From: Neoechinorhynchus agilis
Lineage: Eukaryota; Animalia; Acanthocephala
Reading direction: 5' to 3'
Assembly (NCBI GenBank): GCA_051530055.1
Contig: CM121341.1
Coordinates: forward strand, 6,922,784-6,986,783
DNA: 64,000 nt
The notes under the pieces: generated by a model
Databases searched by the model: none
Told to the model about the DNA's origin: nothing
What the model saw: the letters and a program-made list of their open reading frames with translations, nothing else
Shown here: piece by piece, positions 20,010 through 63,930 of the stretch
How the letters are laid out: every line of letters starts with the position of its first letter
Numbering within the stretch: the stretch's first letter is position 1
Position numbers and translations under genes: made by a program

Positions 20010-22310
20010 ATTGAAAATTAAAAGATTTTGATGAAAATCCTTATATAGAGCGAAAAAGGAGATTTTTCTATAAAAAAACTATAAATTCCATCCAATTGTT
20101 CCTTCGAATGGATGTGTATTCTCAATGGCGAATTGTTACACACTCGGCTTTTATTATTGAAATCTTCATTGCAATTGTTTGAAGGCCTCAGCCTCCTTCT
20201 CAAGCATTTCTTGTAAGTTTTTAATTTAAAAACTTAATAATAAAGCTGGGAAAAACTATAAAAGTCAACTTGGTGTCAACATTTTCCTGAGTCATTTGTC
20301 TCGCTCTCTCACAACGCAAGCGCATACGTTTCTAAATCTCAATTCTTTGAACAAAAACAATGGATAATGAACAGCAAACGCTCAATAGTGGTATTGAAAA
20401 TTAAAAGATTTTGATGAAAATCCTTATATAGAGCGAAAAAGGAGATTTTTCTAAAAAAAACTATAAATTCCATCCAATTGTTCCTTCGATTGGATGTGTA
20501 TTCTCAATGGCGAATTGTTACACACTCGGCTTTTATTATTGAAATCTTCATTGCAATTGTTTGAAGGCCTCAGCCTCCTTCTCAAGCATTTCTTGTAAGT
20601 TTTTAATTTAAAAACTTAATAATAAAGCTGGGAAAAACTATAAAAGTCAACTTGGTGTCAACATTTTCCTGAGTCATTTGTCTCGCTCTCTCACAACGCA
20701 GAGCGCATACGTTTCTAAATCTCAATTCTTTGAACAAAAACAATGGATAATGAACAGCAAACGCTCAATAGTGGTATTGAAAATTAAAAGATTTTGATGA
20801 AAATCCTTATATAGAGCGAAAAAGGAGATTTTTCTATAAAAAAACTATAAATTCCATCCAATTGTTCCTTCGAATGGATGTGTATTCTCAATGGCGAATT
20901 GTTACACACTCGGCTTTTATTATTGAAATCTTCATTGCAATTGTTTGAAGGCCTCAGCCTCCTTCTCAAGCATTTCTTGTAAGTTTTTAATTTAAAAACT
21001 TAATAATAAAGCTGGGAAAAACTATAAAAGTCAACTTGGTGTCAACATTTTCCTGAGTCATTTGTCTCGCTCTCTCACAACGCAGAGCGCATACGTTTCT
21101 AAATCTCAATTCTTTGAACAAAAACAATGGATAATGAACAGCAAACGCTCAATAGTGGTATTGAAAATTAAAAGATTTTGATGAAAATCCTTATATAGAG
21201 CGAAAAAGGAGATTTTTCTATAAAAAAACTATAAATTCCATCCAATTGTTCCTTCGATGGATGTGTATTCTCAATGGCGAATTGTTACACACTCGGCTTT
21301 TATTATTGAAATCTTCATTGCAATTGTTTGAAGGCCTCAGCCTCCTTCTCAAGCATTTCTTGTAAGTTTTTAATTTAAAAACTTAATAATAAAGCTGGGA
21401 AAAACTATAAAAGTCAACTTGGTGTCAACATTTTCCTGAGTCATTTGTCTCGCTCTCTCACAACGCAGAGCGCATACGTTTCTAAATCTCAATTCTTTGA
21501 ACAAAAACAATGGATAATGAACAGCAAACGCTCAATAGTGGTATTGAAAATTAAAAGATTTTGATGAAAATCCTTATATAGAGCGAAAAAGGAGATTTTT
21601 CTATAAAAAAACTATAAATTCCATCCAATTGTTCCTTCGAATGGATGTGTATTCTCAATGGCGAATTGTTACACACTCGGCTTTTATTATTGAAATCTTC
21701 ATTGCAATTGTTTGAAGGCCTCAGCCTCCTTCTCAAGCATTTCTTGTAAGTTTTTAATTTAAAAACTTAATAATAAAGCTGGGAAAAACTATAAAAGTCA
21801 ACTTGGTGTCAACATTTTCCTGAGTCATTTGTCTCGCTCTCTCACAACGCAGAGCGCATACGTTTCTAAATCTCAATTTTTGAACAAAAACAATGGATAA
21901 TGAACAGCAAACGCTCAATAGTGGTATTGAAAATTAAAAGATTTTGATGAAAATCCTTATATAGAGCGAAAAAGGAGATTTTTCTATAAAAAAACTATAA
22001 ATTCCATCCAATTGTTCCTTCGATGGATGTGTATTCTCAATGGCGAATTGTTACACACTCGGCTTTTATTATTGAAATCTTCATTGCAATTGTTTGAAGG
22101 CCTCAGCCTCCTTCTCAAGCATTTCTTGTAAGTTTTTAATTTAAAAACTTAATAATAAAGCTGGGAAAAACTATAAAAGTCAACTTGGTGTCAACATTTT
22201 CCTGAGTCATTTGTCTCGCTCTCTCACAACGCAGAGCGCATACGTTTCTAAATCTCAATTCTTTGAACAAAAACAATGGATAATGAACAGCAAACGCTCA
22301 ATGGTGGTGA
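20010..22310. repeat. 383 bp tandem array, 6 copies, each containing the proximal upstream region and ATG of the Kv gene
   Basis: aacaATGgataatgaacag at 20360, 20743, ~21126, ~21509, ~21893 and 22276. Confidence 0.97.
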
Positions 22311-49689: not shown

Positions 49690-50500
49690 TCGACAATAAT
49701 CCCTCCCACGTCACCCGTCTCATTCAACTTGATTTATCGAAAGCATTAGACTCCGTAGACCATTCACTCCTTCCCCGGACTGCTCCGATTTTCGTCTCAA
49801 CTTATGACAGATCCGCTAACTCGAATATTGCTGTCACCACTTCTCTTTAATATTTTTCTAAACAACCACAAACCTCTCTTCTCTCAATATGCCGACTATA
49901 TCATCCTCATCACCCATTCACCAACTCACCTCTCCTTGACCTCTAACAAAATCACACACATAAACGATTTCTGCACCAATCACAAAATCCGCCTAAATTT
50001 CTCCAAATGCTTCGAGATGATCCTCTCAATCTCCTGCAACCCCACATTCCCCCTGGGTCTCGCACATCACACTTTTCTCCTCAAACGCCTCCGACATTTT
50101 GGAATCAATTAACCCGACCTCTAAGAATTTAACTTCTGCTTTATTTTACCTTCCCTCACCTACGGTTACCCCGTATTTTGCAACCTTTCCAAATCGCTAA
50201 TCCGCCGTCTTCAAAATTCCTCATAAAAGAACATCTAACATTTTCACAACTTACTTTTCCCATCTCACCGAATGCTTCGCTACTATTTTCATGAAACAAT
50301 CAAAACGGCTATCAACCCTTGAACCACAATTTGAACACAACACTCGCAATCCTAATTTGTTTCATTCTCCTTCGACCTCGCAGCTTCTTATACCAACGCT
50401 CCTTTTTCCATGCTGTCCAATCTTCTCTCGGATATCAGAACTTGAAATGATTCTGAGGAAGGAGCAACCTCACAAGCTCTAAAGAAAACAATAACAACCA
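49690..50500 (+). mobile_element. Second copy of the degenerate LINE RT fragment
   Basis: LIQLDLSKALDSVDHSLL plus sequence nearly identical to ~700-1400. Confidence 0.75.
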
Positions 50501-50899
50501 ATTCGCCCACCACCCGAATGAACATTTCTTTGACCGGATATTCAAACCCGAACGAACCGTCTCCGACTGGATATTCCTATCCTAACGAATACGCATTTTT
50601 TGAACAACGACCCCCGACTGGGAACAATTAAAAATACAAGGCACGTTTCACATAAAAACAATAAAAATTCGTTAATACATAAAGTGAATTGAACACTTTG
50701 TCACTTTATCCAACCGTCGCATAACTGAGTATGAATTAATTCCAATTAAGCGGCCACAACCGCTGTGGACCCTCACAACCAACCCACGCTCCCTTTCTAA
50801 CATAAGCATTCATTTTGTATTTTTTACCGATAAACGTATTATAGTATTCTTCGAATTAAGCTCTAGACGAAATGACTCATGAGGTCGAAGAATATCTCG

Positions 50900-53800
50900 T
50901 GTAAATGCCTCCTCTGGGACGCCACTGTGTCGATAAACTCGAGGCCAGCAATCTCAAGTTCTCGGTGGTTCAAGTGGAGGTGCAGTGAGCGCTTCGGAAG
51001 GACGGAAAACGACGAAATACCTAGATTTAGTCCATGAGTTTGTGCCTTTTGGGGTTGAGACCTACGGATCTCTTGTTAGCGAGGCTCTTCAACTTCTGAG
51101 AGATCTGAAGCCTGTGAATGGCCAAAAACAATCAGTGTGGGCATCTCGTCGCAAGAGTTCAAAGCTCTCTCTTATCAGACTCAAGCGACGACGTTGTCCG
51201 TGCCAGGTTGTTGGCAGTCTCCACTGGAGAATCCACGGTCCCGCTGGCATCCGAGGGTACTCGCCGACGAGGCAGTACGGGTCCGGGTTTCAATGAGACG
51301 AGGACAACCGATGTGTCATCCCCACCGTTGCCGCTACGGTACAAATATGGATTCATCGGGACGTCGTGGTCTCATCTGTAGAAAATCAGCCGGCAGATTC
51401 GCAAGACATTCCGAAATTAACATGGTGCTGAGCCGGGCACTTATTTTGGAACCTGTAAACCTCTGTAAGGACGACGGGCGTAGACCTGATGGGGTGACCG
51501 CACCGGAGTGTAAATGCCTCCTCTGGGACGCCACTGTGTCGATAAACTCGAGGCCAGCAATCTCAAGTTCTCGGTGGTTCAAGGTGGAGGTGCAGTGAGC
51601 GCTTCGGAAGGACGGAAAACGACGAAATACCTAGATTTAGTCCATGAGTTTGTGCCTTTTGGGGTTGAGACCTACGGATCTCTTGTTAGCGAGGCTCTTC
51701 AACTTCTGAGAGATCTGAAGCCTGTGAATGGCCAAAAACAATCAGTGTGGGCATCTCGTCGCAGGTTCGCTCTCTCTTATCAGACTCAAGCGACGACGTT
51801 GTCCGTGCCAGGTTGGCAGTCTCCACTGGAGAATCCACGGTCCCGCTGGCATCCGAGGGTACTCGCCGACGAGGCAGTACGGGTCCGGGTTTCAATGAGA
51901 CGAGGACAACCGATGTGTCATCCCCACCGTTGCCGCTACGGTACAAATATGGATTCATCGGGACGTCGTGGTCTCATCTGTAGAAAATCAGCCGGCAGAT
52001 TCGCAAGACATTCCGAAATTAACATGGTGCTGAGCCGGGCACTTATTTTGGAACCTGTAAACCTCTGTAAGGACGACGGGCGTAGACCTGATGGGGTGAC
52101 CGCATTTCCGGAGTGTAAATGCCTCCTCTGGGACGCCACTGTGTCGATAAACTCGAGGCCAGCAATCTCAAGTTCTGGGTGGTTCAAGTGGAGGTGCAGT
52201 GAGCGCTTCGGAAGGACGGAAAACGACGAAATACCTAGATTTAGTCCATGAGTTTGTGCCTTTTGGGGTTGAGACCTACGGATCTCTTGTTAGCGAGGCT
52301 CTTCAACTTCTGAGAGATCTGAAGCCTGTGAATGGCCAAAAACAATCAGTGTGGGCATCTCGTCGCAAGAGTTCAAAGCTCTCTCTTATCAGACTCAAGC
52401 GACGACGTTGTCCGTGCCAGGTTGTTGGCAGTCTCCACTGGAGAATCCACGGTCCCGCTGGCATCCGAGGGTACTCGCCGACGAGGCAGTACGGGTCCGG
52501 GTTTCAATGAGACGAGGACAACCGATGTGTCATCCCCACCGTTGCCGCTACGGTACAAATATGGATTCATCGGGACGTCGTGGTCTCATCTGTAGAAAAT
52601 CAGCCGGCAGATTCGCAAGACATTCCGAAATTAACATGGTGCTGAGCCGGGCACTTATTTTGGAACCTGTAAACCTCTGTAAGGACGACGGGCGTAGACC
52701 TGATGGGGTGACCGCATTTCCGGAGTGTAAATGCCTCCTCTGGGACGCCACTGTGTCGATAAACTCGAGGCCAGCAATCTCAAGTTCTCGGTGGTTCAAG
52801 TGGAGGTGCAGTGAGCGCTTCGGAAGGACGGAAAACGACGAAATACCTAGATTTAGTCCATGAGTTTGTGCCTTTTGGGGTTGAGACCTACGGATCTCTT
52901 GTTAGCGAGGCTCTTCAACTTCTGAGAGATCTGAAGCCTGTGAATGGCCAAAAACAATCAGTGTGGGCATCTCGTCGCAAGAGTTCAAAGCTCTCTCTTA
53001 TCAGACTCAAGCGACGACGTTGTCCGTGCCAGGTTGTTGGCAGTCTCCACTGGAGAATCCACGGTCCCGCTGGCATCCGAGGGTACTCGCCGACGAGGCA
53101 GTACGGGTCCGGGTTTCAATGAGACGAGGACAACCGATGTGTCATCCCCACCGTTGCCGCTACGGTACAAATATGGATTCATCGGGACGTCGTGGTCTCA
53201 TCTGTAGAAAATCAGCCGGCAGATTCGCAAGACATTCCGAAATTAACATGGTGCTGAGCCGGGCACTTATTTTGGAACCTGTAAACCTCTGTAAGGACGA
53301 CGGGCGTAGACCTGATGGGGTGACCGCATTTCCGGAGTGTAAATGCCTCCTCTGGGACGCCACTGTGTCGATAAACTCGAGGCCAGCAATCTCAAGTTCT
53401 CGGTGGTTCAAATGGAGGTGCAGTGAGCGCTTCGGAAGGACGGAAAACGACGAAATACCTAGATTTAGTCCATGAGTTTGTGCCTTTTGGGGTTGAGACC
53501 TACGGATCTCTTGTTAGCGAGGCTCTTCAACTTCTGAGAGATCTGAAGCCTGTGAATGGCCAAAAACAATCAGTGTGGGCATCTCGTCGCAAGAGTTCAA
53601 AGCTCTCTCTTATCAGACTCAAGCGACGACGTTGTCCGTGCCAGGTTGTTGGCAGTCTCCACTGGAGAATCCACGGTCCCGCTGGCATCCGAGGGTACTC
53701 GCCGACGAGGCAGTACGGGTCCGGGTTTCAATGAGACGAGGACAACCGATGTGTCATCCCCACCGTTGCCGCTACGGTACAAATATGGATTCATCGGGAC

Positions 53801-54130
53801 GTCGTGGTCTCATCTGTAGAAAATCAGCCGGCAGATTCGCAAGACATTCCGAAATTAACATGGTGCTGAGCCGGGCACTTATTTTGGAACCTGTAAACCT
53901 CTGTAAGGACGACGGGCGTAGACCTGATGGGGTGACCGCACCGGAGTGTAAATTCCTCCTCTGGGACGCCACTGTGTCGATAAACTCGAGGCTAGCAATC
54001 TCAAGTTCTGGCCGGTTCAAGGTGGAGGTGCAGTGAGCGCTTCGGAAGGACGGAAAACGACGAAATACCTAGATTTAGTCCATGAGTTTGTGCCTTTTGG
54101 GGTTGAGACCTACGGATCTCTTGGTAGTGA
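50900..54130 (+). mobile_element. ~610 bp tandem array (~5.3 copies) of an RLE retrotransposon C-terminal fragment
   Basis: Anchor near 50900, 51510, 52115, 52727, 53339 and 53947; encodes decayed CHPHRC...GL.C...GRF.RH.EIN, DGRRPDG, WDATV, FVPFGVETYG. Confidence 0.88.
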
Positions 54131-54535
54131 GGCACAGCAGACATATCCCTGCCCGCATTTTTAGGCTCCTATGTGGGAAGCGCAGTTCAGCGCATTTTGA
54201 AATCTACTTATCGTATTGATAGGCATTTTGAAGAGGGAATCAGTGAGTAATGTACACTGACCAACTCCGGTCGCCAAAAACAATCAGTGTGGACCTCTCG
54301 TCGCAAGCATTCGGGCGACAATTGAGGACGGCAAATAATTATGTTTACATCTTCAAAATAAAGCGAATAACTTCTACGTATGACGCGCGTTTAAAAGTGA
54401 CGTCACAATGCACGGAAGAATCTAATTAAAAAAATCGAAAAGTTTATCCCATTACGCATTTTTTTAAAACCATATTTGGTTTAACGCTCTTTTTTGGAAC
54501 ATTTTTTCACGGTTATTTCAGATTGAACGACATTG

Positions 54536-57500
54536 ATGTCATCTGACAATCGACTATCATTGACGGGTGCGTTCAATACGGGCTAAAAAACGCCAATAAA
54601 GAGTTTTGATGACTTTACGTTTTTAGTTATATCGGAAGACACAGGAAACTTGGGATCGTTTGGAAGTGTTTCGGATCAAGAGGTAATTCAGTAGACAATG
54701 TCAACAAATGCATCCGCCCGGGTTTCTCCCCAATCGCTCAACGATGATGTTCCGTTGAAACCAACGTTGGTGCGATCTATTTCTTCTCCCCAATGTGACG
54801 AAGACCACCGTCCCATTTCTTGTCCGTGTTCAATGAGCCTTTGCAGTCAAACCGGCTATCTTCTCGTTGCTTCCGCTGATGAACGTCTTGTGGTTTACGG
54901 ACTCGCTCAACCTAGCATAGCTCCTAACCACTTTGAAATCTACCGAAGACCTCAACGTCGACGGAAACGACTCTGCCATCGTCCATTGGTCAAATGGAGC
55001 TGGCATACTAGCCGTAGTGACGTTTTTGCTTTAGCTGTCAATGGATCCGGTCCAGCTGGAGTTAATTTCTATCGGAAATGTGAAAACGGAGACATTGTGA
55101 GCATTAGTGCGGCACCGAGTTCTTTAAGCACTCGAAGACCATCCGTTTTCTCTTCTTCTATCCTATTGTCCACTAATAAATACGTCACTGCTATGGATTG
55201 GTCCAGCATTGCTCAAAACTATTTCGCTTCGTCGTATTCTGACGGATTCACGTTCGTATGGGACTACCGGGATGTTCAAGTACCGTTTTGTCGGATAAAT
55301 GCGTTTTGGCCCGTCGTCCGATCTCATTGGAGCTCATTTAATAGCAATCTGATAAACGTAGCAGCCGGACGACGAGTGTTAGTCTATGATATACGGAACA
55401 CCGGACGCCATTTGACATGTATTGACACGGACCACGACGAACTCGTTGATATGGACTGGAATCGGTTTAATCAGAACCGAGTGGTCACCGCCGGTCGCGA
55501 CGGGAAAATCAAATTATGGTACATCTCACGAATGGGCACCTACAAGCGATGTACTATTCAATTGCTTCCTAATACTAAGAAAAGTCGAATTGATCGAGTC
55601 TCATTTTATCCAGGATCGAACACTGTTGTGGCAACAACCACTTCTTCAAAACGATCAAATCGTGGAGCTTTTGATGACTACACTACACGTCTTAATCTCA
55701 TCGACTTTTCGTTTCCTCCGAGTGGACCAGCCAGCTATAGCGTTAGAGATGTCGTTGGGGCCAGTGGAAGTGGTCGTCTGATCGATTTCGAGTTCTACGA
55801 GGATCCAAGTGTAAATTCTGCTCAACCGGATTGCTATTCGATCCGATCATCGTCTTCCGATATTCAATCGATCAATCAAAGCACAACTCAAATGGTCACA
55901 TGCAGCACTGATGCGATCCTAAGACTCTGGCCACCTTTAAGTATTATGAACGAAGTCCTTCCAAAAACCGATTGGGCCCCGTTCCTTGATGAAAACATCC
56001 GATCAGGAAACCTTCGGTCTCAAGACGGTCCTCCTTCTTACGAAGATGATCAGGACTCACCGACATGCAAAACCGTCCCCACAAACACGGATGATATGGT
56101 TCGACTAGAACTGTTAGCCATACGAAACTCCCAGTTCCCTTGCCTCAAACTTCTCAAATTTACTCGAACCTATTGCCAATTTCTTGTTCAAATTGATGTT
56201 CAAAGCAATGTCATTCTAAAAGCAGATTATGGGCCTGTCATTCATAATCATAGATTTGATTTTCAACATACGAGACGAATAGAACCCGTGTTCACATTGT
56301 CTGAACCTGTACCGATTCATGGCGTTCTTTTAAGAGCTCAAGAGTACGCACGGTCCATAAATAGTCCTCGATTTTTGGTGACTTGTCTTCGTGAAGTCTC
56401 AAAAGCTCTTTTGGCCACTTCTACGGTGACTAAGTCTAACGATCCGGTCAAGAAACGAAATGCACAACAATACGATCGATCCTTTGTCGTCTGTAGAAAT
56501 GTTGATCGATCATTTAAGGTAAAACGAGAAAAAATGATCGATCTTCATTAGACGGTCAGGTCTCCATTACAGTGGCGCTGTTTCTGGACTAGTAACGTGG
56601 ACATGGCAAATAGTTAAGGATGATGACGAAGATGGATGTACGGGACGGAGAAGTTCTGTGAGTTCTACTGGTAGCTCAACAATACCCACACACTCGGCCG
56701 CAGGAAATGTTCGACGGGCACCCGGAACTTTCAAATATTTATTATGTACAAAGGATTTGAGCGCTTTGAAAATTGGAAGACGACAACTTATAAGAACCTT
56801 TTTGATCTCTTTTTTTAGGATTTCGTCCATGGAAATTAATCTACTTTTCCTATTTCACACATTCTCGTGATTTTGCATCAGTTTTCTAATGCTTTCTCAC
56901 AGTTTCTTGGATTGTATTCGGGAAAGAAACTAAATTCGTAATTGTTCTGGCGCAACTTTACTCTTAACTTCCACGCGATATTGATTTATTGTAAATTTTC
57001 TCGACCACCAGATCCGATCCTCTTCAGACATCCTTTAAAAAATTCGTTTTAGATTAATTGGTGCTTACATGAAAGGAACTTGGGTACCCGGGGCCTCTGA
57101 GGATTCCGCCAACACTCAAGGAAGTGTGAGATCACTTTCGAGGGAAGTTAAGAGTAAAGTTGCGCCACAACAATAAATAATGCTTTCTCACCTACGAAAA
57201 TGATTTCTTCTTCTTCTTCTTCAACTAGTCCAAATCTTTAAGTCGTCTTACGATTACTATTGCCTTACACATGCGAGGAGGGTGAGAAACTAAAGCTTTC
57301 TCTAAACCGCGAGGAATTTATCCGCGAAAATAATGTTCCTGATCTTGTACCTCTTAAACAGGACCAACGTCTTCATCAGATATGGATGATATTGAAGAAA
57401 ATTGCTTCGTGTACCGAACCAACTTGTTCAACGTGGTCACCGGCGGAATACAAATTCATTGACAAAGTCCTTACTCATTACAGTCAGAAAAACGAATATT

Positions 57501-60500
57501 TGACGGTGGTCCTAATATTGGCGGCATCTCGTTTGGTGGCAGACGAAGCTTTTTTCGATCGTTTTCGATCTTATCTTCCAATAGTAGAACGATACGCTGA
57601 TCAGTTATACCAATGGTCGTTACATAATCGACACGCTGAACTCATTAAACTTCAACTTTGTGTCCTCTTTCAAGGAGTTCATTATAATGTAAGATTTGTA
57701 GCTAACGCATGCCGAGAAGGTTACGTGAGTAGAAATGAGAACCAACATTCCTTTTTTTGCTCTAATGTCTCCGAAGAGAAAAAAAGGATTGTTGGTATTC
57801 ACGGAACAATAAAAGTATTCGAAAACAAGGAGGTGCAATGTACACATCGAGGTCCAGTGAACGGCAAATGTCGTCGGCGTCACTTCCTTGCTCAAGTAGT
57901 GACAGTATGACTGATCGTCTAAGACGTCTTCATCTTCAAGCATCAACTTCTCAAACTCTGAATAGACAATATTCTATCGACTCGAGTCATGGCTTTCTTT
58001 GTTTTGTGTGCAGACAACCCGTCCGCGGTCACATTATATGCTGCGTTCATTGTGGTCACGGTGGTCATGCCCAACATTTGGCTCAATATTATTTAACGAA
58101 AAAACTCTGTATTTGCGGGTGTATTTGTCAATCTTTCTAGAAAAGAAAAATCTTTTTTAGGTGGACGGCAGTGGTAGAAACAAGAGTCCGAAGAAATCGT
58201 TCACATTTCTTAAGAAAGGAGAAGGTATTGCTAGGTTTAGAAATCCAGTTATCAAAAACTACGAAAATGAGGTAAGTCTTGAATCTTTTATGTGAAACGA
58301 TACCCTTTTTGCCTTCAAAAGGATGAGGATTTTTTTCTTATTAAGCGCGACCATGCTTCTTGGAACGATAATCAATATTCCAAAAATATGAATAGTGTGG
58401 AGAATAGGACTTTTGTTAATATGGACAAGCAAGACGATGGAAAGGTAAGTACTTTTCACGTTGGAAGCATTGCAGCCCAAGTTAACTCTATGTTCTGATC
58501 TTGAACGCTCTAAAATCACACTCTTTAATGGTTTTTCTATGTTCAAGTTGAATACTCGATTAAATTGTCGGTCTCCTCGTCCATTTTCTCGTATTTCAAA
58601 AAAGTTCGTAACTTTTGGAGACAATTTGATAAGCGTAATATCGCATAATTTTTTTCGGTTTTCTTTGATTGATTAAGATTAACGCTCTGTTTTTTCTATG
58701 TTCAAGTTGAATACTCGATTAAATTGTCGGTCTCCACGTCCATTTTCTCGTATTTCTAAAAAAGTTCGTAACTTTTGGAGACAATTTGATAAGCGTAATA
58801 TCGCATAATTTTTTTCGGTTTTCTTTGATTGATTAAGATTAACGCTCGGTTTTTCTATGTTCAAGTTGAATACTCGATTAAATTGTCGGTCTCCGCGTCC
58901 ATTTTCTCGTATTTCTAAAAAAATCTCATTTTTTCGGTTTAGATTTTTCCCATTTTTCTTGTGTCCAACCGATTTATATAAGAAAGCTCTAATGGTTTTA
59001 CTACCATTAAAAAATATCCAATTGATTTGAACGAGCTATCAAATGAGAGAGGCATTTGAGGTGCCTGTTGCTTTCTTATCAGTCTGAATATCACACGTTT
59101 CGTTCCGTGTGCACTAAGCTCTATATATGTGTGTGTGTGTTTGTGTCTCAGAAGCATACTCTTGCAGTGCCAATCTCGAAGATTCCTTCAAAATGTTATT
59201 CCCACTACTAACTTTTGGATTTGTTTGTTGTGGACTATGCGTTGACGACGATGCAGTTCGGGTTTACAACAATTTTGCCGAGATCCGTACACCGTTTTAT
59301 GGATCTCAAACGTTTCTTGAAAGTGATTGGGATTCCATAGACGTGTCGCATCTTAAGCTGGATCATTGTTCTGACGGATACGCTCTCAGATTTAGCGTGA
59401 AGACAACTAATGCCGAAGACCAAAAAGTTGTTGTTCGAACGTCCACTGGTGTCAACATGGTTGAAAAACTGAACGCTACGCTTGTTAATGCATTAAGCAG
59501 CCTTGTCCGAGATGACCAAACCGGTCGGTATTTCTATGTTGCAAAGAATCAGATCGAGTATTATACAAAACCTTCGGAAAAAATCGTGTTGGTTTCATCT
59601 GAAGATGCGTCGTGTCTTAGTCCAGTACTAACGTACGTTCAACGAACTCTGAAATGGTGGAGTCAACATTTCCTTTCTATTGGACCGGACGATTTAGACA
59701 GGGCCCAGTTCACTACTTGGGCAAATGTTCAAAATCTCGGAAAATCAGATATCAATACGACGAATCTTGAGCTAATCACGGGAAGTCACTCGAGTTCATC
59801 TCGATACTCATATCGTAAACACCAATTCGGACCAGAAGGAGATGTTCTTGAACTACGATCTGTCGGTGATTCGAAATGGCGAACAGCGAGCGAACTTCAT
59901 GGCTTGCATGTGTATCCAGGAAGACCAGCTCACATCGCAAGTAAAGAGACCTATAGATTTCCTCTCATAAAGTGCCGGATATTGTTTAAACGAATCGGCG
60001 AAATTAGCCAGTGGCTTGCTGGATCTGGGAAGATTACAGGAGTGTTCAGGCGAACGTATGTGCTTAATAGCACTGATCACTATATCCCAGAAGGTCTTCT
60101 AATTATAGAAGAGTCTGATAGAATTGTCGGCGAGACCAATATGGCCAACACTGCTTCTTTAACTGAACGCAAAATTATCCTTTCTTCTGATGAAGAACTT
60201 AGATACACTCGAATCGCTCGTGTGGAATCACGACACTTATCCAGCACAGCCGAGTTTAGTGCCGGCAATATTACTAATTTAAACATTGACTTAGAGTAGT
60301 TTCTTCTCAAGTTAAAGTCTTCTACTCTCTCCGCCCCCCCATTAAGAGACTGAACTGCTCATAGAGTTTCAAAGTTTGAAAAAACAATTCTCGGTTGATG
60401 TTGTCTATGAAGAAAACGTCTACTCGGATAATATCGTCGCAAACTGCACACTATTGGAACCTAATATTCCCAACCTGGTTTTGGTGACCAAAGAAAGTTC

Positions 60501-62067
60501 AAACTTCAAAGTTTCCACCCGTCTTGAACCCAATTCAACGCGTAAAATCGTTTTATCGGTGTCTTTGCTCGGTGCTTATTTTAAGTAAATTTACCAAGTT
60601 TTTAAAATATGCTGCTTTTGTGGGCGTTTAATCGATCAATTAGAAAATCGTTTTGTATTTAGATGTAATCGATATTGGGTCTGAATGGTTTTCTTATATT
60701 TTTTATAAAGAATATTTAAAATAACAAAGTTAAGCGTTCTTCGCTTTTTTTTCGGAAGGCGTAATGACAAAATAGCGCCATAATAACATTTCTTTAGGTC
60801 AACGAAATTGAACAGATCGATGCGAGTCTAAAAGAATGGGACGTTTTATCCGAAGATGAATTGGATGCAGAAACGGAAGGATTGAGTAAAGAAGCAAAAC
60901 AAAGGTTGAACGATTGGTTCAATGCGAATATGCCGGAAAAAATCACAATTGATAAATCAAAATCCAGAGAACAATTAGAGACGGGATCGCTGCAGAAAAC
61001 GCTAAAAACCAAGATCGCACAATTGGAGCAGACAATGAATGCATTTAGTCGCGAAAATCGAGTTTTACTTAAGTTGATGCGGGATAATGAAGAAGCAAAA
61101 CATCGTTTACAAGAAGATCGAACGGTTTTCGAGAAGCAGCGAAAAGTTGAACTTGAAAAATTTAAGGATTGGAAAAAACGAGAAAATGAAAGGTTGGAAG
61201 TCAAGTTTGAAATTGGTTCGAGCTCTACGGCTAATATGAATTTTTGATACATAAGTTTCGTAGTTAAGTTGATAATGGAAGGCAGGTTTCCTTGATGTTT
61301 AGTTATATTAAGGAACAAGTTTTTCTTTTTTGAGATTCGCGTCTTTTATCTCTCTCTAATTAAGATTGACAAAAGAGAATGAAAAATTGGAGGAGAAGGT
61401 TAAGCAGATGAAATCTGAATGTACTAATGGAGAATATGTGAAGCAGATAGAGTCGTTGAACAGTCGCATAAATGGACTTAAGTTGGAGATTAAACAGAAG
61501 GAAAGAAGTTATGTTATGAACGAGAGCAAACTCAAAACGAAGATTGTTGAATTAGAACGCGAAAATGGAGAATTGAAAGGTAGAGCTAAGACACTTGAAA
61601 CGCGAAGAAATGAGTTGGCGAGTAAATTAAATGCGTTACAACGCGAGATGGTCGATTGATTTCTTTACGTTCACTTCGAACTCGATCGATTATTTCACTT
61701 AAGATCAGAGAAAACAAAGTCCGAGAAGAACTCAAATGCCCGTGCTCAAGAAGTATCGCTACCTGACAAGAAGCCGATCTCTTCTGATTCGTCTGTTCAA
61801 AAGACTGCATCGCTGGATATGATTCTTGAAAGACAGTTGCAAAACGGTGGAAAGGAGATTAGACTGAGTGATGGCAGTCGAACGGTAATCGACACAAGTG
61901 GAATAGTAATCACGGAAACGAGTGAGGGCGATCGATTGATCAATTATCCTGACGGGAGAAAGGAGTATCATACTGAAAACTATCGCAAGAAGATATATCC
62001 AAATCAAAGAACAGTAATTGAGTACAAAGATGGTCGAATTGAAGTGCAGTATGATGAAAAAAAGTGA
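54536..62067 (+). CDS. CENPJ: CENPJ/SAS-4/CPAP centriole protein; hosts two nested same-strand genes
   Basis: Exons 54536-54566, 54627-54682, 58161-58271, 58322-58444, 60798-61192, 61365-61650, ~61711-62067, all GT-AG and phase-compatible; FLKKGEGIARF (PN2-3 motif), CPAP-like coiled coil, TCP10/G-box C-terminus. Exons 1-2 rest on splice and phase logic only. Confidence 0.82.
54698..58140 (+). CDS. WDR59: GATOR2 subunit WDR59 (Sea3) inside CENPJ intron 2
   Basis: WD40 repeats, RWD-like region, YSGA and DLSAL motifs, YADQLYQW, C-terminal C..C....RG....C..CGHGGH..H RING; introns 56493-56559, ~56.85-57.05 kb, 57154-57242, 57725-57786. Confidence 0.85.
58530..58920. repeat. ~160 bp tandem repeat, ~2.5 copies, in CENPJ intron 4
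   Basis: ttttctatgttcaagttgaatactcg repeated three times. Confidence 0.9.
59193..60588 (+). CDS. Secreted DUF4140/DUF4139-like protein inside CENPJ intron 4
   Basis: Signal peptide; VRVYNNFAEIR; LTY....LKW; WA.V.N....D.....LELI.G; probable intron 60296-60374. Confidence 0.62.
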
Positions 62068-62227
62068 AGAGATTGGGAGTTAAGAAACACAATGATCGTT
62101 CTTAAAGCCCCCTTGAAAGCAAATAACGTCCGCAACATCTAATCTACCCTTTAGACAAATATTCTCAATTAATATAAAATTATTCGTCATACAAGTAAGT
62201 AAATTAACATTAAACATTTTAAAATAT

Positions 62228-63930
62228 TTAGCGAAAACGGCCTTTATGCTGGCCATTAATATGCCTGCCCATCCTCCTTGTAATCAGGTTCATCCTTAGC
62301 TTCTCTCCTTCCTCGGTTGTCGCTACCACGTTGGCAGCATTGCCTCGTTGTACTGCGAGCGAGATATTTTGTGTGGATAATGAACACAAAAGTAACGAGA
62401 TCGTGCGATTCCAGAGGCGGAGAAAGTGTACTCGGTTTCCAACGAGATTACTTCGACGGTCGAAATTAAACATGGAAGCTGCTTAACTCATTTAGGAATA
62501 AATCTTGAAAAGGATTTTGGAAAAATGTATTTGTTAATCGCTAACAGCACCTATGAGCGATGGGGTGCTCGTCTTAATCAAGAGAATTCAGAAATATCAG
62601 AACTTGCTTTGGATCGAACTCTGTATGCTTTTGAACACGTCCCAGTTAAATCACGAACATTCCTGATTGACATATTCTATGTGAGTTGTAAATTTAAGCT
62701 TCCACCAAAATATGCGAGTTCTCTCACTTCCACGGTGTGCGTTTGGTTAAATTCAATATGACAACGATTGTGATATGGATTCCTTAAAAACACAGTTTGC
62801 GTGGAAGCAAAAAAATTAATTTTTAAGTTTTTTTTCCTGAAAAATTAAGACATAAAAGCATTTCCGAAGTGTTTACTTTTTAAAACATCAATGGTTTCTA
62901 AATACGCTTAATATCTCGGGCGTTTTCATCATATTAATGATCCAACATGAACACTTTGATGAGTAAATGGCGATTATAGATTTATAAGGCGTCCGCGCTA
63001 AATACGACTTCTCACCTCTCTCGAGAGGGTTTTCTCGGCAATCAATTTATCCTGTTGGATGCAATCCATCGTTTACTTGGTCTTCCTCGTCGGAGATTTC
63101 CCGTTACTTCCAGTTTCTCCGTGCTGCTTCACACTTGGAAACTTTATCGTTCGAGAGCAACCTTGCAGACGTCGAAGATCGCCGTGAGTTGTCTTAGTTA
63201 TCTTAGAACTTCGTTTTCGTTTGACAACGTACTTCCCGGCCCGGTTGAAAAAGGAGGAAGTGGAGGGTTGGCATCATTTTATTTATTTAACACGGCAAGA
63301 TAACAATTAGGGTTTTTCGTTAGTCTAGAAGTTATCGTTGGTCCTTCGTCTGCTCTATTGGACCTCAAGTATTAGGTCGATCTCAGGCAACCTCGGAGGC
63401 CCAAAAGACCAGATTAATCTTTTATCCTGGTAGTATTACTTTTCTTTATCCATTAACAAATTGCCTTTTGTAAAAAAAGTGTGTGCATCATTGAATTCCA
63501 ATCGAATTGTGCGGGAGCATTGTTCGCTGAAGTTAGGGTTAGAAGGAGAGGGAAAGTAGAATACTTGTTCATTAGATATAAAGAACTTACCTTTATTAGA
63601 AAATGAAGGGAAGAATAAGATTTTTCCCAAAAATAAGCGTGAGAGGAAGGATAAAAGAGGCTCATAAGATTATAATTTGATAAAAGTTTATGATGCTTAT
63701 TAAAACATCTAAAAAAGAAGGCAAACCTAAGTTCAGGAAGGCGACCTTTCCCGAAAAAACAAGCCTCCTATGAGAGTTTTTAGAACGGGTAATATAATGT
63801 TCGACAAAATATCTCGCTGGCAGTACAACGGGGCAATGCTGCCAGCGTGATGGCGACGGTCGAGGAAGGACAAAAGCTGGAATTTGGTGGGAGGTGGTGA
63901 ATGTAAAGAAAAGTAACCAAATAGAAAACA
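62228..63930. mobile_element. Scattered decayed RLE retrotransposon fragments in both orientations
   Basis: ISLAVQRGNAA at ~62330-62370 (minus) and ~63820-63870 (plus); LPGPVEKGGSGGL RT-like motif at ~63230. Confidence 0.55.

Follow-up and report, generated by a model that had tools for sequence, protein, structure and literature searches.

How can a gene that fills an intron of another gene, on the same strand and almost from end to end, obtain a messenger RNA (mRNA) of its own? The question is raised by a stretch of 64,000 nucleotides (nt) from the acanthocephalan Neoechinorhynchus agilis (assembly GCA_051530055.1, contig CM121341.1, positions 6,922,784 to 6,986,783 of the forward strand; hereafter the window, numbered from its first letter), in which a WDR59-like coding sequence lies within the second intron of a CENPJ/SAS-4 gene. 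Selection is believed to disfavour nested genes on the strand of their host, as their signals collide with those of the host. Here the collision is extreme, with 15 nt left before the guest and 20 nt behind it, and still each of the worms examined makes both mRNAs.

The RNA data were assembled contigs, not reads, from four public runs (X1-X4), aligned to 54200-59400. The runs are very probably the poly-A-captured single-worm libraries of PMC12690905, and of the words sampled from 54400-58400 the four contain about 90%. The assembler clips short leader or poly(A) tips at contig branch points. Binned depths recomputed from the listed contigs closed exactly: for X1, the bin 54548-54721 gave (93.7x77 + 121.7x26 + 54.8x67)/174 = 80.8, the observed value, and for the bin 58028-58201 the computed 82.8 again equalled the observation. 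No unlisted contigs are therefore hidden in those bins. The host gene is laid out as follows.

54522..54566, + strand: CENPJ exon 1, with a 14-nt 5' untranslated region and the ATG at 54536; joint 54566|54627 in four runs.
54567..54626, + strand: CENPJ intron 1, 60 nt, GT..AG, with an RNA joint.
54627..54682, + strand: CENPJ exon 2, 56 nt, without ATG in any frame, ending in GAG|GTAATT; RNA joints on both sides.
54683..58160, + strand: CENPJ intron 2, 3478 nt, GT..AG, with the whole WDR59-like gene inside; joint in four runs, depth 82-152.
58141..58160, + strand: spacer AAAAGAAAAATCTTTTTTAG, 20 nt, with the host acceptor tract and a possible weak poly(A) signal, AAGAAA, at 58144-58149.
58161..58271, + strand: CENPJ exon 3, with the tubulin-binding SAC motif KKSFTFLKKGEGIARF, reading VDGSGRNKSPKKSFTFLKKGEGIARF...; no in-frame ATG.
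58272..58321, + strand: CENPJ intron 3, 50 nt, GT..AG.
58322..58444, + strand: CENPJ exon 4, from RNA contigs.
58445..60797, + strand: CENPJ intron 4, 2353 nt, enclosing a second same-strand gene.
60798..62067, + strand: CENPJ exons 5-7, encoding the coiled coil and the G-box, with the stop at 62065-62067; RNA supports the start of exon 5, and the inner boundaries are predicted.

The junction on which the nested arrangement depends was found in the RNA contigs of all four runs. These contigs join 54682 to 58161 with GT..AG ends and the removal of 3478 nt, at depths of 121.7/81.9/89.8/152.5, and the host acceptor TTTTTTAG ends at 58160. The neighbouring splices 54566|54627 (GT..AG) and 58271|58322 (GT..AG, 50 nt, depth 110-203) were likewise present in 4/4 runs. 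A loose contig end behind 58446 is identical to the window from 60800 onward, and the next splice is therefore 58444|60798. The whole WDR59-like coding sequence, from the ATG at 54698 to the stop at 58140, thus sits inside one host intron that is demonstrably spliced out. It occupies 3443 of the 3478 bases of this intron (99.0%), with 15 nt between the end of host exon 2 and the guest ATG and 20 nt between the guest stop and host exon 3. Given these margins, there is no space in the intron for a promoter or terminator of the guest's own, which means that start and end signals must be shared between the two genes or must overlap. Contigs covering 54655-56497 and 57258-58188 run unspliced across both margins with 0 mismatches; the assembly is therefore contiguous there, and misassembly is excluded. 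A stem bringing the ends of the intron together was considered and dropped, its duplex energy being -58.4 against -49.6 +/- 5.9 for shuffled sequence, with 27 of 300 shuffles equally good.

An original prediction, made from the letters of the window, had proposed this arrangement. When the sequence of 53800-59600 was reread and the junctions were recomputed, all of its coordinates held, and the 54682-58161 junction that it foresaw is the one present in all four runs. Its description of the exon at 58161-58271, with the SAC motif, no in-frame ATG and an acceptor 20 nt after the WDR59 stop, was confirmed, and it was also right that the intron leaves no room for a promoter or poly(A) site of the guest. 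The contigs crossing both margins without mismatch removed the misassembly with which it had reckoned. CENPJ and the WDR59-like gene are a real same-strand nested gene pair.

Concerning the host, Pfam recognized Tcp10_C (PF07202) at 61819-62067 with 42.4 bits (cut-off 36, E 5e-11). A HMMER search with the G-box (query 61702-62064) against 1.84 billion representative proteins returned 121 matches, and the named homologues were CENPJ/CPAP proteins, such as 'centromere protein J-like' from Ciona and 'Centrosomal P4.1-associated protein' from Lottia. The SAC motif FL(K/R)(K/R)G(E/Q)G..RF occurs in more than 40 CENPJ homologues, and exon 3 carries the version FLKKGEGIARF; this exon also matched positions 49-66 of Pfam PF25779 in part (20.6 against a cut-off of 22, E 5e-4). 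Exons 5 and 6 matched the coiled coil of CENPJ homologues at 4e-8 and 4e-9. Just 29 residues, encoded by exons 1-2, precede the SAC-motif exon, compared with 100-450 in other animals. Judged by these similarities, the host is a reduced, shortened CENPJ/SAS-4 gene. A profile of the CPAP LID segment built from 41 homologues, run against exons 1-2 and every frame of 50000-58160, produced no score. The idea that exon 2 represents this segment was dropped after the null profile, the by-eye likeness (SFGSVSDQE versus TFEELLEEQ) being weak. The 3' end of the CENPJ mRNA probably lies near 62235-62260, after an ATTAAA, because contigs run for 1439-1440 nt from 58159.

The guest consists of four coding segments interrupted by three unusual introns.

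54698..56493, + strand: WDR59-like segment a, WD40 propeller and middle region (Pfam WD40, PDB, Pomphorhynchus laevis P0001, gap-free RNA contig).
56494..56548, + strand: hairpin intron 1, 55 nt, non-GT-AG with a 4-nt TAGA ambiguity; joint in four runs; fold z -4.0.
56549..56766, + strand: WDR59-like segment b, from RNA contigs; frame kept.
56767..57257, + strand: hairpin intron 2, 491 nt, non-GT-AG; joint in four runs, depth 16-33.
57258..57739, + strand: WDR59-like segment c, from RNA contigs; the P0001 alignment crosses the next junction.
57740..57798, + strand: hairpin intron 3, 59 nt, phase 0, ends AA..AT; fold z -6.2.
57799..58140, + strand: WDR59-like segment d, C-terminal RING-like zinc finger, stop TAG at 58138-58140.

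Joined, the four RNA-supported segments give 2838 nt, or 945 codons with a single terminal stop; the guest is accordingly counted as 945 amino acids (aa). For the propeller, the best natural full-length PDB matches were human WDR59 104-219 (4.6e-8) and yeast Mtc5/Sea3 (9.6e-7). The C-terminal zinc finger matched human WDR59 907-967 with an E value of 1.2e-5, and WDR24 more weakly (0.018). Among 5.8 billion proteins searched, the only close relative was the 885-aa P. laevis protein P0001. Its alignment covers the propeller and, in one stretch across the third hairpin junction, the C-terminal 210 residues; the C-terminus is 48% identical, with a Cys/His pattern common to both. The spliced guest is collinear with P0001 and with human WDR59. 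A general domain scan gave no Pfam match to the central RWD domain of WDR59, and transcript contigs encoding the 600-aa and 617-aa WDR59 products, sought for more 5' sequence, were not on record. Taken together, the sequence comparisons identify the guest as an intact WDR59/Sea3-like GATOR2 gene. Its RNA depth was 34-55 along the gene, about ten times the background of 1-6 in host intron 4, and about one-third to one-half of the host junction depth, in RNA that was probably poly(A)-selected. This depth, the in-frame removal of the introns and the 945-aa open reading frame (ORF) indicate that the guest is expressed and intact, and is not intron noise.

The three inserts were excised precisely and in frame in the RNA contigs, which gives RNA-level support for the removal of the odd hairpin inserts of this genome from transcripts. 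Within the ambiguity of their borders, none of the three has GT..AG ends. All pair end to end, and the short two fold as hairpins; the terminal inverted arms of hairpin intron 2 are 14 nt long and lie 4 and 2 nt from its ends, and an internal inverted repeat measures 39 nt. Removal was partial for the 55-nt and 59-nt inserts. Both forms of the 59-nt insert were assembled in X3 and X4, and the retained form alone in X1 and X2. The spliced and unspliced forms could conceivably stem from presence/absence polymorphism at the DNA level. RNA and assembly differed at 57205-57213, by a 3-nt deletion in three runs and two substitutions in one, and at 57778, where all four runs had an additional AA in an A run. 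These differences all fall inside hairpin inserts and represent either polymorphism or homopolymer errors of the assembly. As all guest introns are of this non-GT-AG hairpin type, no canonical splicing was seen within the host intron.

We then turn to the 5' end of the host mRNA, where one further feature is needed.

54500..54521, + strand: pyrimidine tract and acceptor TTATTTCAG; a non-genomic leader of 22-25 nt is joined before 54522.

In X1, X3 and X4, the contigs of exon 1 extend past the acceptor 54521|54522 with letters foreign to the genome at that place. The leader variants of the three runs are TCGAATATTTAAAAACTTACAAGCA, AATATTTAAAAACTTACAAGCA and ACGTATTAAAAACTTACAAACA; the 3' portion reads ...TATTTAAAAACTTACAAGCA, with variants, and ends in the form ...AAAAACTTACAAG(C/A)A. 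With as many as 3 mismatches allowed, a leader 22-mer was matched nowhere in the 64-kb window, and contig depth over 54374-54521 was zero, so that no outron RNA was seen. One variant agrees at 16/22 positions with the bdelloid rotifer leader GGCTTATTACAACTTACCAAGAG (PMC3795323). The CENPJ leader is most simply a spliced leader added in trans, as judged from this one gene. Since it stands at a host AG acceptor and is not encoded in the window, a spliced-leader route is possible in this animal. Spliced-leader trans-splicing in acanthocephalans would seem to be indicated directly here, perhaps for the first time. Trans-splicing found no mention in the acanthocephalan literature searched, and the paper on the N. 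agilis genome and transcriptome and the one on syndermatan reduction are silent on introns, trans-splicing, operons and nested genes. Among rotifers, expressed sequence tags of the monogonont Brachionus revealed no leader in one study (PMC1925144), and operons are unreported (PMC7986045).

With a 15-mer of the leader at 2 mismatches, the only match in the window was to a minus-strand tandem array at 20010-22308 (383-bp x6, 99% matches). In each unit, an ORF of 13 codons comes after TTAAATTAAAAACTTACAAGAAATG, which has a 14-mer in common with the leader. The array is not an obvious leader RNA gene, as no GT donor follows the match, and it may be an amplified, reverse-transcribed leader-bearing 5' end. 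A palindromic TGACGTCA, resembling a cAMP response element, was noticed at 54398-54405, in the 190 nt of unique sequence that separate the leader acceptor from a repeat family, and is a candidate for a promoter element of the CENPJ/WDR59 unit.

How, then, might the guest mRNA be made? The explanation that we prefer, tentatively and at slightly less than an even chance, is that a shared upstream promoter region is combined with a mutually exclusive processing choice, which yields either CENPJ or WDR59 mRNA. The promoter region upstream of 54522 would feed both genes, and the processing choice would set the output. If the leader is added at 54522, exons 1-2 would be kept, donor 54682 would pair with the acceptor at 58160, WDR59 would be lost in the lariat, and the product would be CENPJ mRNA. 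The other outcome would involve the following feature, read from the sequence.

54687..54694, + strand: candidate leader acceptors TTCAG|TAG|, 6 and 3 nt before the WDR59 ATG, overlapping the host donor region.

If a 5' end is made at these TTCAG/TAG acceptors (54691/54694), the host donor would be removed together with the outron. Without its donor the host intron could not be excised, and the result would be a WDR59 mRNA with its first AUG at 54698. Its 3' end would lie either just inside host exon 3, after the weak AAGAAA at 58144, or at the host poly(A) site near 62240. The AAGAAA of the spacer (58144-58149) precedes a T run, and the two together could direct cleavage just inside exon 3. 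Any RNA that runs on must follow host splicing to the host poly(A) site, because intron 3 is fully spliced and intron 4 is nearly uncovered.

Several observations bear on this choice. The first of the guest contigs begins at 54655, 30 nt (k-1) ahead of the host-donor branch, and the last reaches 28 nt inside host exon 3, to 58188. Both margins are therefore crossed by RNA molecules; these unspliced contigs could be nascent host pre-mRNA. The contigs of exons 1-2 had depths of 94/84/72/128, no higher than those of the spliced-junction contigs (122/82/90/153), leaving little room for WDR59 mRNAs that contain exons 1-2. This comparison weakly favours leader addition, or a separate start for WDR59, over a retained intron. 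No ATG was found between 54539 and 54697 in a scan of the sequence. In P. laevis, a TTTCAG stands 2 nt before the WDR59 ATG (L001 9980-10003), and this putative acceptor slightly favours leader addition.

There are also points that weigh against a processing choice of this kind. No contig shows a leader on WDR59, an absence that is uninformative given the clipped branch tips, and the bin 54548-54721 contains no unexplained contig. The candidate acceptors have no pyrimidine tract (AATTCAGTAG), and neither AATAAA nor ATTAAA occurs close to the WDR59 stop. Mean depths of contigs went into the depth arithmetic, which is affected by the drop in coverage towards 5' ends. The amount by which exons 3-4 exceed the junction contig in depth varied between runs (-11/+42/+113/+16); on average it is about the guest depth, and it is too noisy to decide whether guest RNA runs on into the host exons. 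Finally, a single leader-bearing gene is thin evidence for general spliced-leader trans-splicing.

A narrower form of the preferred explanation, quite possible although on balance doubtful, is that a single leader-trans-spliced unit gives CENPJ or WDR59 mRNA according to whether the 3.5-kb intron is cis-spliced or a leader is added just past its donor. If this is true, an operon cistron is embedded in the intron of another gene, each primary transcript gives one product only, and the locus would be the first operon-like unit in Syndermata. The original prediction had gone as far as an 'operon-in-an-intron switch', which is plausible but unproven. The splicing of CENPJ across WDR59, the RNA that joins guest to host exons and the leader on the host mRNA are in line with it. 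The 'several internal splice sites' that CENPJ was supposed to skip are not canonical sites, as the guest introns are of the hairpin type.

An unlikely explanation that still carries weight is an internal promoter, by which WDR59 starts within the first 160 nt of the host; the two genes would then be separate overlapping transcription units, and the tight fit the end state of compaction. Speculatively, the CCAAT/AATAAAG stretch of CENPJ intron 1 (54592-54603) could serve as such a promoter, with a start in exon 2. Exon 2 and the 15-nt spacer are free of ATG, so that any start past 54538 makes the WDR59 AUG the first, and the finding that exon 1-2 depth does not exceed junction depth fits as well. 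Moreover, the second nested gene of this locus seems to own its 5' end (an adapter-capped contig start at 59170). On the other hand, the strong donor GAG|GTAATT would remain in a transcript starting in exon 2, so that splicing to exon 3, with the loss of WDR59, is to be expected. Between 54627 and 54697, neither a pile-up of starts nor an adapter-capped end was reported, and the promoter motifs were read by eye.

An isoform that retains the intron (leader-exon 1-exon 2-intron-exon 3 and onward), from which WDR59 is translated by re-initiation, is improbable. Here a 32-codon upstream frame, MSSDN...DQEVIQ, would end at the TAG of 54692-54694, and ribosomes would re-initiate 3 nt on, at 54698, in the identical frame. 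The proximity of this stop to the WDR59 ATG agrees with the idea, as do the RNA graph, in which WDR59 is connected both to exon 2 and to exon 3 in 4/4 runs, and the lack of separate RNA ends among the contigs. However, retention predicts an extra 34-55 in the depth of exons 1-2, and the observed 94/84/72/128 do not rise above the junction values. Re-initiation 3 nt past a 32-codon frame is usually inefficient, and the unspliced crossing reads could again be nascent host pre-mRNA.

To the view that WDR59 has no separate expression, its signal being host pre-mRNA or lariat from a decaying gene, we give hardly any credence: three frame-breaking hairpin inserts in the assembled gene, and the assembly in X1 and X2 of only the form retaining the 59-nt insert, would suit it, but the inserts are excised exactly in RNA, the guest depth is about ten times that of host intron 4 in probably poly(A)-selected RNA, and the 945-aa spliced ORF is intact, with a propeller and RING that align with WDR59 of P. 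laevis and human. That the 54682-58161 junction is an artefact of a paralogous CENPJ copy or of misassembly is just as improbable, since, even if the RNA evidence is made of contigs and covers this part of the genome alone, the GT..AG ends are exact at the predicted sites in four individuals, independent contigs cross both margins without mismatch, and a single G-box protein of this genome (P0002) appeared in the representative search.

The surroundings of the pair have features of their own. The second same-strand gene, in CENPJ intron 4 (58445-60797), is an ORF at 59193-60299 with a signal-peptide-like start and no Pfam match. Its RNA depth reached 309, above that of the host, and in one run a contig start capped by the Illumina adapter marked its RNA 5' end at 59170, which suggests that it has its own transcription start there. 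A 159-bp x2.5 tandem repeat lies upstream of this gene, at 58529-58922. Directly upstream of the CENPJ promoter region, 50985-54164 is a GC-rich (about 50%) tandem array of units of about 610 bp, in which the same two overlapping ORFs (MSASEGRKTTKYLDLVHEF...) are repeated at least five times. That other copies of this repeat family are expressed is shown by RNA contigs whose loose ends lie at 54205-54332.

In the public gene calls on GCA_051530055.1, WDR59 and CENPJ exons are fused into one product of 1095 aa (window 54698-61659). Such a wrong fusion matters for counts of orthology and gene loss in this reduced parasite. Another public call, P0002 (152 aa), adds a 71-aa extension to the G-box through an intron at 62064-62547 (the region 54698-62761 corresponds to L002 2880-10943). 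This extension is doubtful and unsupported, because transcript length argues against it.

As for relatives, synteny could be compared on the guest side. In P. laevis, WDR59 (L001 10001-12712) is free-standing and almost free of introns, with 2712 nt for 885 aa, and an AATAAA overlaps its stop codon (L001 12700-12730). Within +/-10 kb of it, neither a CENPJ piece (by tblastn) nor a SAS-4 motif (in six frames) was found. Nesting is therefore not common to the two acanthocephalans examined. The CENPJ locus of P. laevis was not located, the ten best G-box matches being other animals.

Known systems resemble the pair in part. In Caenorhabditis elegans, the first intron of cha-1 contains unc-17, the two having a 5' exon in common, and unc-60 is similar (PMC3875643; PMC3053374). 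In this cholinergic locus (unc-17/cha-1, and VAChT within ChAT in flies and mammals) and in unc-60, a same-strand guest likewise sits in an early host intron, and the way in which a 5' region common to both is processed decides which of the two mRNAs is made (PMC3875643; PMC3053374). They differ in that the shared 5' exon is cis-spliced to the guest, which has its own poly(A) site, and in that there is intron sequence to spare. At the N. agilis locus, no RNA joint was found from donors 54566 or 54682 to acceptors before the WDR59 ATG, the only such acceptors lying 8-11 nt past the donor. In contrast to the cholinergic locus, the host exons here precede the guest as coding exons, and the two proteins belong to unrelated pathways, CENPJ to centriole duplication and WDR59 to nutrient sensing.

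In spliced-leader operons (Ciona, Oikopleura and the SL1-type of C. elegans), co-oriented genes lie 0-60 nt apart and the leader is added at the acceptor before the downstream ATG (PMC7986045). The leader on the host mRNA is a likeness to these. Here, however, the 'upstream cistron' is no more than coding exons 1 and 2 of the host, whose remaining exons follow behind the guest, so that resolving the guest destroys the host message, unlike in spliced-leader operons. We found no openly licensed paper on 'alternative operons'. Same-strand guests in Drosophila tend to lack canonical introns (PMC3814207). The WDR59 guest is likewise without a GT-AG intron and wholly within a host intron, whereas the Drosophila guests have long introns around them and promoters and terminators of their own, and the guest here fills 99%. 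If the choice is made on one precursor, the locus offers a compact natural model of cis-splicing in competition with leader trans-splicing or 3' end formation. It is best filed as a real and extreme nested gene pair, a variant of these known arrangements.

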